Shown here piece by piece: positions 4,036 through 5,318 of a DNA stretch of 64,000 nucleotides. The translations under genes were made by a program, and so were the position numbers. The DNA lies in IMG/VR virus record IMGVR_UViG_3300046665_000548, positions 248,001 to 312,000 of that record; one strand, given 5' to 3'. Under the pieces are notes generated by a model, which saw nothing but the letters and a program-made list of their open reading frames with translations, searched no databases and was not told the DNA's origin. Position 1 is the first letter of the stretch; each line of letters starts with the position of its first letter.

Positions 4036-4108
4036 CTCGGGAAGTAGGACTCGAACCCACATTTTCTGGAGTCAACATCCAGCATCCTACCAATTAGACG
4101 ATTCCCGA
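4036..4108 (-). tRNA. tRNA-Gln(TTG), atypical (G33, no CCA)
   Basis: TCGGGAA/TTCCCGA acceptor, anticodon arm CTGGA-TGTTGAC-TCCAG, GGTTCGAGTCC; 3' GCTA. Confidence 0.8.
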
Positions 4109-4115
4109 ATAAGAC

Positions 4116-4190
4116 TGGCTGGGGCGGGAGGGATCGAACCTCCGAATGCGGGAATCAAAATCCCGTGCCTTACCGCTTGGCGACGCCCCA
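4116..4190 (-). tRNA. tRNA-Gln(TTG), CCA encoded
   Basis: TGGGGCG acceptor, CGGGA-TTTTGAT-TCCCG, 3' GCCA. Confidence 0.95.
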
Positions 4191-4202
4191 ATAGTCTTAA
4201 AG

Positions 4203-4287
4203 TGGTGCGGGTAGAGGGACTCGAACCCCCACGTCTTTCGACACTGGAACCTAAATCCAGCGCGTCTACCAATTCCGCCATACCCGC
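4203..4287 (-). tRNA. tRNA-Leu(TAG), CCA encoded
   Basis: GCGGGTATGGCGGAATTGGTAGACGC, CTGGA-TTTAGGT-TCCAG, long variable arm, ACCA. Confidence 0.95.
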
Positions 4288-4291
4288 GCGG

Positions 4292-4434
4292 TGTCTAAGG
4301 GAGGAATCGAACCTCCGTTGTAGTTGATGCTGTGAGGCTCCTTCGGTTTCTTTCCGGACTTCCGCCGACGATCACGCCACAACTATCAATCTACGCCGGT
4401 TCGCCCGGTGCGTATGCCACTCCGCCACATAGAC
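4292..4434 (-). ncRNA. tRNA-Leu-like RNA with stunted anticodon arm and ~75-nt variable arm
   Basis: GTCTATG/CTTAGAC acceptor, Leu-type D arm GGCGGAGTGGCATACGC, T arm GGAGGTTCGATTCCTCC, inserted stem-loop at 4320-4394. Confidence 0.7.
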
Positions 4435-4436
4435 AA

Positions 4437-4524
4437 TGGTGTGGATACTCGGATTCGAACCGAGACGAGGTTTACCTCGGTAGGTTCTGAGCCTACTGCG
4501 TCTACCAGATTCCGCCATATCCAC
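4437..4524 (-). tRNA. tRNA-Leu(CAG), CCA encoded
   Basis: GTAGG-CTCAGAA-CCTAC, long variable arm, ACCA. Confidence 0.95.
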
Positions 4525-4535
4525 AAACAATATTT

Positions 4536-4621
4536 TGGTGCGCCAAACAGGATTTGAACCTGTACGCTCTTTCGAGCACGGGCCTCTCATGCCCGCGTGT
4601 CTACCCTTCCACCGTCAGCGC
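4536..4621 (-). tRNA. tRNA-Leu(GAG), CCA encoded
   Basis: CGGGC-ATGAGAG-GCCCG, long variable arm, ACCA. Confidence 0.93.
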
Positions 4622-4634
4622 GAGATGTACTTTG

Positions 4635-4705
4635 ATGGAGGCCCTGGATTCGAACCAGAACTAACAGGGTCAGCACCTGTCCTTCTACCGTTAAAGTAGC
4701 CTCCA
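4635..4705 (-). tRNA. tRNA-Gln(CTG), atypical (G33, no CCA, extended acceptor stem)
   Basis: TGGAGGC/GCCTCCA acceptor, ACAGG-TGCTGAC-CCTGT, GGTTCGAATCC. Confidence 0.75.
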
Positions 4706-4731
4706 TCAAAGTACACCAAAGATGAGATTAG

Positions 4732-4804
4732 CTAGGGGAGTAGGGCTCGAACCTACGACCGCCTGAATCAGAATCAGGAGCGCTACCAACTGCGCCATCC
4801 CCCA
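4732..4804 (-). tRNA. tRNA-Gln(CTG), no CCA, extended acceptor stem
   Basis: TGGGGGA/TCCCCTA, CCTGA-TTCTGAT-TCAGG, GGTTCGAGCCC. Confidence 0.9.
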
Positions 4805-4816
4805 GCTAATCTCACC

Positions 4817-5101
4817 TCAAACTTTCACACCTCCTTTCCTCATCTTCTTCAACTCTGCTTTCGATAGTTCTTTTTCCACGATGTATCGCATCGGGTCGCC
4901 GTCTTCGTCGTCAACGACCGAGAATCCGGCCGCTTTGAAAGTCCTTGGGATGTTCACCGAACAGGTGCAGTAATCCCAAATTCTACTGTCGTTCTTCTCG
5001 TAACCGTCCCGAAAGACGACCCGATCTAGACCTCCCACGAGCTTCCCGATTTGTCGGGGCGTCGTGTAGATGTGTTGTCGAAAACCTACGCTGGTGCACA
5101 T
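4817..5101 (-). CDS. hypothetical protein, first gene after the Leu/Gln attenuator
   Basis: MCTSVGFRQH... with GGAGA SD; stop lies just before tRNA-Gln. Confidence 0.7.
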   Translation of the reverse strand: MCTSVGFRQHIYTTPRQIGKLVGGLDRVVFRDGYEKNDSRIWDYCTCSVNIPRTFKAAGFSVVDDEDGDPMRYIVEKELSKAELKKMRKGGVKV

Positions 5102-5117
5102 TGCATTTCTCCAAAAC

Positions 5118-5148
5118 AAAAGGCCCCCAGGATTTCTCCGGGAGCCTT
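5118..5148 (-). terminator. second intrinsic terminator of the Leu/Gln leader
   Basis: AAGGCTCCCGGA-GAAA-TCCTGGGGGCCTTTTG. Confidence 0.7.
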
Positions 5149-5161
5149 ACATGCGAACATG

Positions 5162-5191
5162 AAAAAGGCCCTGCCGGAGTTCCGGAGGGCC
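5162..5191 (-). terminator. attenuator terminator of the Leu/Gln tRNA operon
   Basis: GGCCCT-CCGG-AACT-CCGG-C-AGGGCC-TTTTT; 5' arm complementary to leader segment GAGGGCCAACC. Confidence 0.85.
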
Positions 5192-5219
5192 ACCTTTGGT
5201 TCAGTTGCTAGTCACAGCA

Positions 5220-5282
5220 TCACTGCACGCGGGGTTGGCCCTCGTTGGTAAGTTGCAGTTGCTGGAGTAGGTTCTTGAACAT
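5220..5282 (-). CDS. Leu/Gln-rich attenuator leader peptide MFKNLLQQLQLTNEGQPRVQ
   Basis: Codons 5-11 are CTA CTC CAG CAA CTG CAA CTT; ATG directly after the promoter; followed by antiterminator/terminator. Confidence 0.8.
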   Translation of the reverse strand: MFKNLLQQLQLTNEGQPRVQ

Positions 5283-5287
5283 GGTTT

Positions 5288-5318
5288 TATTTATCTCAGA
5301 CTTATGTTGCGCCGTCAA
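5288..5318 (-). promoter_or_regulatory. promoter of the Leu/Gln leader (TTGACG-N17-GATAAA overlapping TAAATA)
   Basis: Minus strand TTGACG GCGCAACATAAGTCTGA GATAAATA AAACC ATG. Confidence 0.7.

Follow-up and report, generated by a model that had tools for sequence, protein, structure and literature searches.

The purpose and the control of phage tRNA genes have been debated for decades. In a window of 64,000 nucleotides (positions 248,001–312,000 of the 607,744-bp IMG/VR virus record IMGVR_UViG_3300046665_000548), a cluster of Leu and Gln tRNA genes lies behind a promoter and a very short open reading frame (ORF) that carries Leu and Gln codons. This arrangement raises the question of whether ribosomes that read the short frame decide if the tRNAs are transcribed. 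Our computational analysis indicates that they very probably do; as judged from sequence and folding models, this leader and its counterparts described below would be transcription attenuators of the classical ribosome-mediated (leader-peptide) kind, with tRNA genes of the phage itself as their cargo. Features that define an attenuator were found in silico, namely a promoter-near ORF, a run of cognate codons, an intrinsic terminator, an exclusive antiterminator and stall-dependent switching. From these features we infer that the leader is translated and that termination and read-through occur in vivo.

All elements of the Leu/Gln locus lie on the minus strand. The sigma-70-type promoter (5290–5318) consists of TTGACG at 5318–5313, a 17-nt spacer and GATAAA(TA) at 5295–5288, and the strict promoter pattern has four matches in the window, three of them at tRNA loci. 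An ATG at 5282–5280 opens a leader ORF of 20 codons (5220–5282), which lacks a Shine-Dalgarno (SD) sequence and ends in a TGA stop codon at 5222–5220. Since this ATG is placed only 7 nt past the −10 element, the mRNA would be leaderless or nearly so. The Leu/Gln leader and a second, Ser-specific leader in the window share this leaderless type of spacing, with the ATG 7–9 nt beyond the −10 element, and it is plausible that the two SD-less ORFs rely on leaderless or near-leaderless initiation in their host. Codons 5–11 of the leader (5270–5250) read CTA CTC CAG CAA CTG CAA CTT and form a regulatory panel in which seven of seven codons are cognate and each of the four CTN Leu codons and of the two Gln codons appears. 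A run of seven CTN/CAR codons occurs only once in the six frames of the 64-kb window, compared with 0.015 occurrences per shuffled window. The promoter, the SD-less 20-codon ORF and the composition of the panel had been proposed in an earlier note on this DNA, and each was recovered at these positions.

The genes behind the leader (4035–4804), identified with ARAGORN and Rfam, are tRNA-Gln(ctg) in two copies, Leu(gag), Leu(cag), a tRNA-like RNA, Leu(tag) and Gln(ttg) in two copies, and every anticodon of the cluster has a cognate codon within the leader panel. The earlier note had described the cluster as encoding only Leu and Gln tRNAs. Its list of Leu(TAG, GAG, CAG) and Gln(TTG ×2, CTG ×2) stands, while the word "only" does not, as the cluster also contains the tRNA-like RNA (4288–4436), which it had overlooked. 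This RNA is conserved, lacks an anticodon loop and fills a gap of 150 nt; we left it uncounted as a tRNA because its ARAGORN intron calls were mutually inconsistent. Also overlooked was ORF94 (4817–5101), which encodes a 94-aa small protein of no assigned function, has a good SD and, from its position between the attenuator and the tRNAs, is predicted to be co-transcribed with them.

The leader ORF is followed by terminator T1 (5162–5194), which consists of a stem (5191–5167; −18.9 kcal/mol) and a U-tract (U5, 5166–5162). Leader codons 14–17 (5233–5243) provide the 5′ strand of an antiterminator, AT1, which we evaluated by duplex energy and stall simulation. In particular, GAGGGCCAACC (5243–5233) pairs with GGTGGCCCTC (5194–5185), which is the T1 5′ arm with its flank, around an inner hairpin located by folding at 5202–5225. 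The AT1 duplex has an energy of −18.8 kcal/mol compared to −10.5 ± 2.0 kcal/mol for shuffled sequences, and only one of 1000 dinucleotide shuffles was equal or better. Thus, the complementarity between codons 14–17 and the 5′ arm of the U-tailed terminator, which the earlier note had pointed out, beats 999 of 1000 shuffles. With a ribosome on codons 5–9, the nascent transcript adopts AT1 as its minimum free energy (MFE) fold; with the ribosome absent, the 5′ half of the inner hairpin instead pairs with the Leu/Gln codons, forming a 1:2 hairpin.

The analysis also revealed a second terminator, T2 (5111–5148), which the earlier note had missed. T2 contains an 11-bp stem (5148–5120) and a TTTTGTTTT tail that extends to about 5111 (tail sequence UUUUGUUUU), has an energy of −19.3 kcal/mol and is conserved in the related metagenomic phages L003, L004 and L014. 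It is wired to T1 by a relay antiterminator, AT2, in which the T2 5′ arm pairs with the T1 3′ arm that is freed when T1 is unformed. After AT1 has formed, this T1-to-T2 relay becomes the MFE fold, and it is conserved. T1 resembles T2, and the relay pairing may perhaps be in part a by-product of duplication.

A strong promoter, a length of about 120–170 nt and tandem terminators are also the typical shape of a small RNA (sRNA) gene, and the T1–T2 segment has a weak, sub-threshold Rfam match to a Bradyrhizobium sRNA (E = 0.056). Moreover, functions in trans are reported from Sinorhizobium for released attenuator RNAs and for leader peptides. The locus might accordingly be read as a self-contained sRNA or micropeptide gene with incidental or trans-acting codon content and with the tRNAs expressed from elsewhere. 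However, such a gene leaves the antiterminator geometry unexplained, and a role in trans could coexist with attenuation rather than replace it. Together with the evidence from other phages given below, this makes a self-contained gene very unlikely.

Stalling was simulated with a ribosome footprint that blocks A−15 to A+12. In eight of the nine leaders of the window clade, the antiterminator forms with a probability of ~0.7–1.0 as long as the A site lies no further along than the last one or two codons of the run, and with a probability of 0 immediately past that point. The switch point corresponds to the end of the cognate run in eight of nine window-clade leaders, and also in leader C and six of seven others from the unrelated phage LR756504.1. 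The blocked zone takes in part of the codon run of the L008 leader, and the stall profile of leader G of LR756504.1 is ill-defined. The antiterminators are helices of 7–16 bp that use the terminator 5′ arm and represent the MFE fold of the nascent RNA; they are stronger than 94–100% of shuffles in 16 of the 18 leaders tested, the exceptions being leader D (56/500) and L048 (874/1000). In transcripts that end ahead of the terminator 3′ arm and carry no ribosome, the antiterminator is often already favoured (P = 0.3–1.0), and so the classical behaviour in which no translation means termination is not clearly predicted. In the MFE folds of full-length transcripts, the codon run is engaged in a long hairpin and the terminator is formed as well. 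For the Leu/Gln leader, equilibrium folding of the full transcript places the terminator ahead of the antiterminator by only ~3 kcal/mol, an advantage so small that the switch must be kinetic.

The second leader in the window is an independent replicate with an identical architecture ahead of four Ser tRNAs, and it too lies on the minus strand. Its promoter (11649–11677) is composed of TTGACA, a 17-nt spacer and TATAAA, and a near-leaderless ATG opens an ORF of 23 codons (11568–11639). Eight of the ten codons at positions 6–15 specify Ser (including AGC, TCA, TCG, TCG, TCA, TCT, AGC and TCC), and every anticodon in the Ser cluster is represented by a Ser codon of the leader. The antiterminator is an 8-bp helix between CGGGGTCC (11595–11588) and GGACCCCG (11540–11533), and the terminator (11501–11540) has a stem at 11538–11509 and a U5CU3 tract, with an energy of about −23 kcal/mol. 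A ribosome located at the stop codon of this leader leaves the antiterminator 5′ strand physically uncovered. The cargo (10231–11465) comprises ORF77 (phrog_20427), ORF87, ORF99 (DUF433) and the four tRNA-Ser genes (tga, gct, cga and gga; 10728–10231). The single tRNAs of the window (Phe; Ser, twice) have plain promoters and no leader.

An unbiased scan of the window for short ATG ORFs that are followed by a terminator and draw at least seven of eight codons from two amino acids returned the two leaders and one unrelated match. Short ORFs and hairpins are common, and a Ser-rich short ORF at 2517 (minus strand), which has neither promoter nor ATG, proved to be antisense to a gene encoding 243 aa. 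A chance co-occurrence of short ORF, hairpins and tRNA cluster is nonetheless effectively refuted by the shuffle and background statistics and by replication in independent genomes, leaving it a probability close to nil.

L003, L004 and L014 retain both leaders, with identities of 81–94% that exceed those of neighbouring genes in each comparison. The Leu/Gln leaders of the window, L003 and L014 are 92–94% identical, compared to 81% for ORF94, 67–69% for the promoter spacer, 72–86% for the tRNAs and 67% for a neighbouring protease gene. The Leu/Gln promoter layout is kept in L003 and L014 with its spacer region just 67–69% identical, while the leader frame, the stop codon and codons 4–20 are conserved in L003, L004 and L014. 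Leader frame and stop codon are in fact conserved in all relatives, and SD-like AGGA/GGAA motifs are present in the L007, L008 and L013 leaders. Between the Ser leaders of the window and L014, the Ser codons of the run show five synonymous and no non-synonymous changes, whereas the non-Ser codons 3–5, 7 and 14 changed amino acid. Constraint on Ser codons of this kind argues against incidental codon content in a self-contained sRNA gene.

Base pairing in the Ser-type leaders also covaries. The antiterminator helix is GGGGUCC:GGACCCC in the Ser type, GGGGGUUC:GAACCCCC in L007 and GGGGUUCU:AGAACCCC in L013, and it shows one fully compensatory pair (C-G to U-A) and one G-U change; the terminator stems covary among relatives as well. 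These helices were tabulated explicitly, since MAFFT alignments of the Ser-type leaders misaligned the antiterminator strands. The few close relatives belong to one clade, and the Leu/Gln leaders differ too little among themselves for covariation to be seen. The earlier note had called for covariation and codon-conservation analysis in relatives, which thus revealed retained leaders, a covarying Ser-type helix and synonymous changes in the Ser run.

Within this homologous family of Ser-type leaders the codon run changes in step with the tRNAs behind it. The L013 run, Ser-Gln-Gln-Gln-Ser-Ser-Ser-Ser, precedes Ser tRNAs (tga, cga and gga) and Gln tRNAs (ctg and ttg), and the L007 run of three Gln, one Ser, one Trp and three Ser codons precedes tRNA-Trp and Ser-like genes. 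L013 also contains a promoter-like site immediately before its tRNAs, so some arrays may in addition be expressed independently. The Leu/Gln leader of L014, complete with both terminators, adjoins the first tRNA; ORF94 is absent, no other ORF intervenes, and the T2 tail is separated from the tRNA by 38 nt. A gap of this size has no room for another promoter, and the tRNAs must therefore be read from the leader promoter, which is difficult to reconcile with an sRNA gene whose neighbouring tRNAs are expressed from elsewhere.

A DNA similarity search with the leader region against 50,697 phage records gave zero matches, protein-anchored and pattern scans of IMG/VR recovered the source record alone, and the promoter-to-terminator pattern in IMG/VR gave 21 unrelated AT-rich matches in addition to the source record itself. 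Pattern scans of JGI metagenomes gave no match for the Leu/Gln pattern and two for the Ser pattern, both of which were false positives in coding sequence, and a scan of GTDB genomes for the Leu/Gln leader found none. The ORF77-family loci L015/16, L038-40, L045/46 and XacN1 are ordinary gene blocks without leaders, and L010-12 and L041/42 are mixed tRNA arrays with no obvious leader in the stretch examined.

Codon-matched leaders also exist outside this clade. LR756504.1, an uncultured, unrelated, AT-rich phage (636 kb, 26% GC), contains eight of them, with runs for T/I/R/N/M, R/I/M, E/A/I/V/G, F/W/H, K/Q/D/Y, K/Q/Y, K and L/S/C, and each precedes tRNAs for the amino acids of its own run. The antiterminator complementarity is 8–13 nt, and, per leader, a fraction of 0.0002–0.03 of ~6,550 background short ORFs scores equally well. 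Behind leader D, a "tRNA-Trp-like" gene reflects a reading of its CUCCAAA loop and is not confirmed by ARAGORN. One more codon-matched leader was found in LR756500.1. Thus, across three phage groups, the codon runs of at least 12 distinct leader types agree with the amino acids of the tRNAs that follow, a correspondence that a self-contained sRNA or micropeptide gene does not predict.

In the window, protein ORFs lie between terminator and tRNAs, and classical attenuators respond to amino-acid supply. True attenuators could then sense amino-acid starvation in order to regulate ORF94, ORF77, ORF87 and the DUF433 protein, with the tRNAs as passengers. Stalling is blind to whether a tRNA is uncharged or absent, so amino-acid starvation would trigger read-through too. 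However, the L014 Leu/Gln leader and leaders A–G of LR756504.1 lead directly into tRNAs without an ORF, and the panels track the tRNA set isoacceptor by isoacceptor and not the composition of the ORFs. We consider regulation of the small proteins unlikely to be what the leaders are for, and this alternative concerns their purpose, not their mechanism.

The codon runs are, by construction, complementary to the anticodons of the downstream tRNAs. T-box elements sense tRNAs via a specifier codon, and the run could in principle pair with tRNA anticodons in a translation-independent RNA switch that senses uncharged tRNA. Against this, the ATG and the stop codon in frame with it are preserved throughout, the codon runs keep to one reading frame that starts right after the promoter or SD, and the stall geometry fits the footprint of a ribosome. 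The 7–17 specifiers, for up to five amino acids, would be unprecedented among tRNA-binding riboswitches. Neither T-box nor other riboswitch families match the window or the L013 leader, even with relaxed thresholds. No Rfam leader family matches the window at the gathering threshold or, over 3000–7000, at E ≤ 1, and Thr_leader gives a sub-threshold match to the L013 leader (24.8 bits compared to a cut-off of 55; E = 0.47). A T-box-like switch is therefore extremely unlikely. The attenuator layout claimed in the earlier note is instead supported, all in silico, by the Ser replicate, the relatives, the tracking of cargo by codon runs, LR756504.1 and the stall geometry.

The ribosome-mediated attenuator would work as follows. 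Host RNA polymerase would start at the strong sigma-70-type promoter, and a ribosome would at once translate the leader ORF. With all Leu(CUN) and Gln aminoacyl-tRNAs plentiful, the ribosome would clear the panel and cover codons 14–17; T1 would then fold, the transcript would end at ~5162 and any leaked polymerase would be halted at T2. If any of the tested isoacceptors were scarce, the ribosome would stall in the panel at codons 5–10, leaving GAGGGCC free to pair with the T1 5′ arm before the 3′ arm is transcribed. The orphaned T1 3′ arm would capture the T2 5′ arm, so that one sensing event would disable both terminators, and polymerase would continue into ORF94 and on through the seven tRNA genes, whose products would relieve the stall and close a negative-feedback loop. 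The Ser leader (11639–11501) would work in the same way for its four Ser tRNAs. Candidate triggers include a phage codon demand that the host tRNA supply does not match, the decay of host tRNAs during a long infection and tRNA cleavage by defence nucleases; a device that responds to an A site starved of one particular tRNA would also sense such cleavage. The earlier note had suggested host anticodon-nuclease attack or starvation as possible triggers. The phage thus probably produces additional tRNAs only when their supply to the ribosomes is short.

The E. coli leader-peptide attenuators trpL, hisL, leuL, thrL, ilvL/ivbL and pheL control amino-acid biosynthetic operons, and multivalent panels are known among them (Thr and Ile in thrL; Leu, Val and Ile in ilvL). 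The phage leaders share with these systems a promoter-proximal short ORF with regulatory codons, an intrinsic terminator, an exclusive antiterminator on the terminator 5′ arm and a ribosome position that decides the fold. They differ in that their cargo is tRNA genes rather than enzymes, in that the elements are phage-encoded, in the leaderless start of the Leu/Gln and Ser leaders, and in the two relay-linked terminators of the Leu/Gln version. In addition, a panel can span as many as five amino acids and covers each isoacceptor of its array, with specificities for Ser, Gln, Lys, Asn, Arg, Glu, Gly, Cys, Tyr and Asp. No leader-peptide attenuator is known to us for Ser, Gln, Lys, Asn, Glu, Gly, Tyr or Asp. 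The phage leaders have no sequence membership in the Rfam leader families, the only match being the sub-threshold Thr_leader hit in L013.

Other systems share part of this logic. E. coli pheST (pheM leader) and the Streptomyces alaS and trpS leaders likewise attenuate the decoding machinery of the same amino acid, but the genes regulated there encode aminoacyl-tRNA synthetases, whereas here they are the tRNAs themselves, giving direct product feedback. T-box riboswitches also let the status of a specific tRNA choose between terminator and antiterminator before genes for the same amino acid; their direct binding of tRNA requires no translation, and their conserved Stem I and T-box motifs are absent here. 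Some actinobacterial leader ORFs are leaderless (PMC8079986). tRNase toxins that hit one isoacceptor stall ribosomes at hungry codons and engage the Cys attenuators of M. tuberculosis (PMC13096801). As is proposed for the phage leaders, loss of a single tRNA, there through VapC4, stalls ribosomes on the leader ORF and switches the attenuator (PMC13096801), but the output there is cellular cysteine metabolism genes and here would be virus-encoded replacement tRNAs. Phage tRNAs are reported to counter tRNA-targeting defences or host tRNA decay (eLife 2023, PMC10264068; Nature 2024, PMC11464382; Nat Commun 2024, PMC11555353), which provides a rationale for tRNAs on demand; the tRNAs themselves were studied there, and the abstracts mention no regulatory sensor before the tRNA genes. 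In agreement with the earlier note, a full-text literature search found no prior description of an attenuator that controls a phage tRNA array. The mechanism is classical, and what seems new is the tRNA-array cargo and the multi-amino-acid codon panels.

A broader proposal, in which we have moderate confidence, is that huge phages widely use an unrecognised class of multiplexed attenuators in which a leader, read like a test strip, carries codons for every isoacceptor of the array and makes tRNA supply self-regulating, in a setting of coupled transcription and translation and with a further use as a sensor of defence nucleases. The textbook mechanism would thereby extend to tRNA cargo, with direct product feedback, and to new amino acids. 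The leaders offer a simple signature for annotating operon boundaries in tRNA arrays and, for synthetic biology, compact modular sensors of individual tRNA pools. They also make the codon-compensation and anti-defence hypotheses testable in terms of which codons stall, when and in which hosts. For the biology of the phages, they argue that giant phages transcribe these operons where ribosomes gain immediate access, and they suggest that the tRNA output of huge phages is tuned by demand, codon by codon.

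The Leu/Gln leader lies on the minus strand of the window, which is part of a 607,744-bp IMG/VR contig. Other genes of the window specify a family-B DNA polymerase, a ClpB-like ATPase and a DNA ligase. Its promoter consists of a −35 element, TTGACG (5318–5313), 17 nt and a −10 element, GATAAA (5295–5290). The ATG of a 20-codon ORF follows at 5282, 7 bases past GATAAA, and the spacing suggests a leaderless start; the TGA stop is at 5222–5220. Codons 5–11 are CTA CTC CAG CAA CTG CAA CTT. Behind the ORF are a first terminator, T1 (stem 5191–5167, U5 at 5166–5162), a second, T2 (stem 5148–5120, tail TTTTGTTTT), and ORF94, which encodes 94 amino acids and is preceded by a Shine-Dalgarno sequence (5101–4817). 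The tRNA array (4035–4804) starts 12 bases past the ORF94 stop and comprises Gln(ctg) x2, Leu(gag), Leu(cag), Leu(tag) and Gln(ttg) x2; all five anticodons have cognate codons in the leader. Thus, the promoter, 20-codon ORF, codon run, T1 and tRNA cluster that the earlier note had described are all present at these minus-strand coordinates, but T2 had been overlooked. Its statement that the cluster holds only Leu and Gln tRNAs is right for the seven tRNAs, but a conserved tRNA-like RNA also lies among them, at 4288–4436.

These features exceed chance expectation. A run of seven CTN/CAR codons occurs once in the six frames of the window compared to 0.015 times per shuffled window, and the strict promoter pattern has four matches in the 64 kb, namely the Leu/Gln and Ser leaders, one tRNA-Ser promoter and one other. 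The pairing that the earlier note proposed between leader codons 14–17 and the T1 5′ arm was borne out, with a duplex energy of −18.8 kcal/mol that was equalled by 1 of 1000 dinucleotide shuffles.

The Ser tRNA cluster (10728–10231, minus; anticodons tga, gct, cga and gga) is also headed by a leader. Upstream of it on the minus strand, the promoter (TTGACA, 17 nt, TATAAA) is followed 9 nt on by the ATG of a 23-codon ORF, in which codons 6–15 are AGC CAG TCA TCG TCG TCA TCT AGC GCC TCC, with cognate codons for each of the four anticodons. The leader segment CGGGGTCC is complementary to GGACCCCG at the base of a strong terminator. In its sequence, the Ser leader is the same device as the Leu/Gln leader, an internal replicate. 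Solitary tRNAs for Phe (36769–36839, minus), Ser-gct (53682–53769, plus) and Ser-gga (228–317, minus) have plain, sigma-70-like promoters of their own 7–100 nt upstream, and no leader ORF was found before any of them in the window; therefore, attenuation serves arrays and not each tRNA. The Ser operon also encodes proteins. One of them, ORF99 (10740–11039, minus), directly before the Ser tRNAs within the attenuated operon, belongs to DUF433 (E = 2e-9), whose fold is commonly that of an antitoxin-like DNA-binding partner. ORF77 (11232–11465, minus) belongs to the small protein family phrog_20427, which has >3,000 homologues and recurs in or beside tRNA arrays of jumbo/huge phages (L010–12, L041/42, L047, L048 and the window's clade); this placement does not hold for all phages (T4-like blocks, XacN1).

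To simulate stalling, a ribosome footprint from −15 to +12 of the A-site was blocked and the transcript was folded up to emergence of the terminator 3′ arm. For the Leu/Gln leader, the antiterminator probability was 0.97 for stalls at codons 2–9, fell to 0.84 at codon 10 and 0.43 at codon 11, and was 0 for codon 12 and beyond; for the Ser leader it was 0.93–0.99 up to Ser-11, fell to 0.74 at Ser-12 and 0.03 at Ser-13, and was 0 for codon 14 and beyond. Thus, as in classical attenuators, the regulatory run stops exactly where stalling ceases to be productive. A ribosome at the Ser leader stop codon leaves the antiterminator strand uncovered. Without a ribosome, the full-length minimum free energy (MFE) structure places the codon run in a long hairpin with the terminator formed, and equilibrium folding is ambiguous on this state. 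In the Leu/Gln leader, pairing of the T1 3′ arm with the T2 5′ arm is the MFE structure (−52.1 kcal/mol) once the antiterminator using the T1 5′ arm has formed and before the T2 3′ arm emerges. Formation of this antiterminator would free the T1 3′ arm to capture the T2 5′ arm, and thus a single sensing event could disable both terminators; when T1 forms, T2 would stop leak-through.

We reached related metagenomic sequences through the proteins encoded in both operons. L003, L004 and L014 all have the Leu/Gln leader together with T1 and T2; the T1–T2 relay and the Ser leader are kept in L003 and L014. Identity is 92–94% for the Leu/Gln leaders and 81–93% for the Ser leaders, compared to 81% for ORF94, 70–85% for ORF77, 72–86% for the tRNAs and 67–69% for both the promoter spacer and a neighbouring gene. 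When the window is compared with L014, all five changes in Ser codons are synonymous, and adjoining non-Ser codons changed amino acid, a pattern that points to selection on codon identity and not on the peptide or raw sequence. In L014 the first tRNA lies 38 nt behind leader, T1 and T2 with no ORF between; therefore, the tRNAs are the cargo.

The more diverged Ser-leader homologues L007 and L013 have the terminator tail and inner hairpin of the Ser leader but other codon runs. The L013 run (Ser, Gln x3, Ser x4) precedes tRNA-Ser tga, cga and gga, which are weak calls made by ARAGORN at a relaxed threshold only, and tRNA-Gln ctg and ttg; the L007 run (Gln x3, Ser, Trp, Ser x3) precedes tRNA-Trp and Ser-like genes that run on to the end of the contig. 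The antiterminator helix is altered on both strands with pairing kept (UCC/GGA in the Ser type, UUC/GAA or UUCU/AGAA in the others). Some arrays, such as that of L013, may have extra promoters. At L013 6480–6860 lie three or four tRNA-Ser genes whose T loops are unusual; ARAGORN recovers them solely when its threshold is relaxed, and they escape the Rfam tRNA model.

Through an ORF77 homologue we reached an unrelated lineage, two uncultured huge phages of high AT content deposited in GenBank, LR756504.1 and LR756500.1. LR756504.1 (636,363 bp, examined in 50-kb pieces) has 38 tRNAs by ARAGORN. Behind each of its eight leader ORFs come first a terminator and next tRNAs for the amino acids of the run. 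A Thr/Ile/Arg/Asn/Met run precedes Thr, Asn, Thr, Arg, Arg, Ile and Met, and a nested Arg/Ile/Met run stands before the last three of this array (Arg, Ile, Met). The other runs are Glu/Ala/Ile/Val/Gly (then Glu, Ala, Ile, Val, Gly, Glu), Phe/Trp/His (then a Trp-like gene, a weak call by eye, His, Phe), Lys/Gln/Asp/Tyr (then Asp, Tyr, Tyr, Gln, Lys), Lys/Gln/Tyr (then Tyr, Tyr, Gln), Lys as AAG AAA AAG AAA (then Lys ctt, ttt, ttt) and Leu/Ser/Cys (then Leu, Leu, Ser, Cys, Ser). Among ~6,550 background short ORFs, the fraction scoring as well was 0.0002–0.03 per leader. Each leader has 8–13 nt of complementarity to its own terminator 5′ arm, and in most the simulated stall boundary is the run's end. 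One LR756500.1 leader has a run including His, Glu, Val, Trp and Leu, followed by tRNAs for His, Glu, Val and Trp, with Leu(tag) 1.2 kb further; the run also has Ile, with no tRNA-Ile behind. The device is therefore not peculiar to one clade. Several LR756504.1 leaders are preceded by a shared promoter-like motif, AAAACATTT, a few bases and ATATATACGTTATAATA (for example, record 135640–135610, 222650–222600, 309630–309665 and 402040–401995). Odd tRNA-like pairs whose anticodon loops defy assignment recur at 136122, 402360 and 461088.

Flanked by tRNA-Leu(cag) and tRNA-Leu(tag), the tRNA-like RNA of the Leu/Gln array (window 4288–4436, minus; L003 10564–10716; L014 10985–11146) combines an 8-bp acceptor stem with a D arm, a canonical T arm and a variable arm of ~75 nt with compensatory changes; it has no anticodon loop, and a 4–5 bp stem with a 5-nt loop takes the place of the anticodon arm. 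It is not a decoding tRNA and may be a decoy or scaffold. At 5327–5628 (minus), immediately before the promoter of the Leu/Gln leader, a separate promoter, TTGACG-N16-TATTTT, heads a highly structured RNA of ~270 nt (z = −7.3) closed by a 12-bp terminator (5355–5327); L003 and L014 keep the first hairpin of this RNA upstream of the same leader. In its content of Leu(tag), Gln(ttg) x2 and Gln(ctg) x2, the array at 4035–4804 (minus) presumably resembles the E. coli metT-leuW-glnUW-metU-glnVX operon, a likeness that may account for the joint occurrence of Leu and Gln tRNAs.

The trp, his, leu, thr, ilv and phe leaders work by the mechanism proposed here, and leader-peptide control of the translation apparatus is represented by the aminoacyl-tRNA synthetase pheST. 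Streptomyces alaS and trpS, also aminoacyl-tRNA synthetases, are under leader-peptide control (PMC8079986), and in mycobacteria tRNase toxins stall ribosomes at hungry codons and trigger Cys attenuators (PMC13096801). Full-text literature searching found no description of leader-peptide attenuators before tRNA genes, phage or cellular, and the leaders matched no Rfam leader family or T-box. Sub-threshold Rfam matches were the Bradyrhizobiaceae sRNA BjrC68 over T1–T2 (5112–5185, minus; 20.3 bits, E = 0.056) and a full-length Thr_leader on the L013 leader (5852–5957; 24.8 bits, E = 0.47). On evidence that is computational throughout, we therefore class the system as a known switch, in which the tRNA cargo, the specificities, the multiplexed codon panels and, in the Leu/Gln case, the two-terminator relay are new. 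Candidate triggers are phage codon demand out of step with the host's tRNA supply, host tRNA decay, and defence nucleases.
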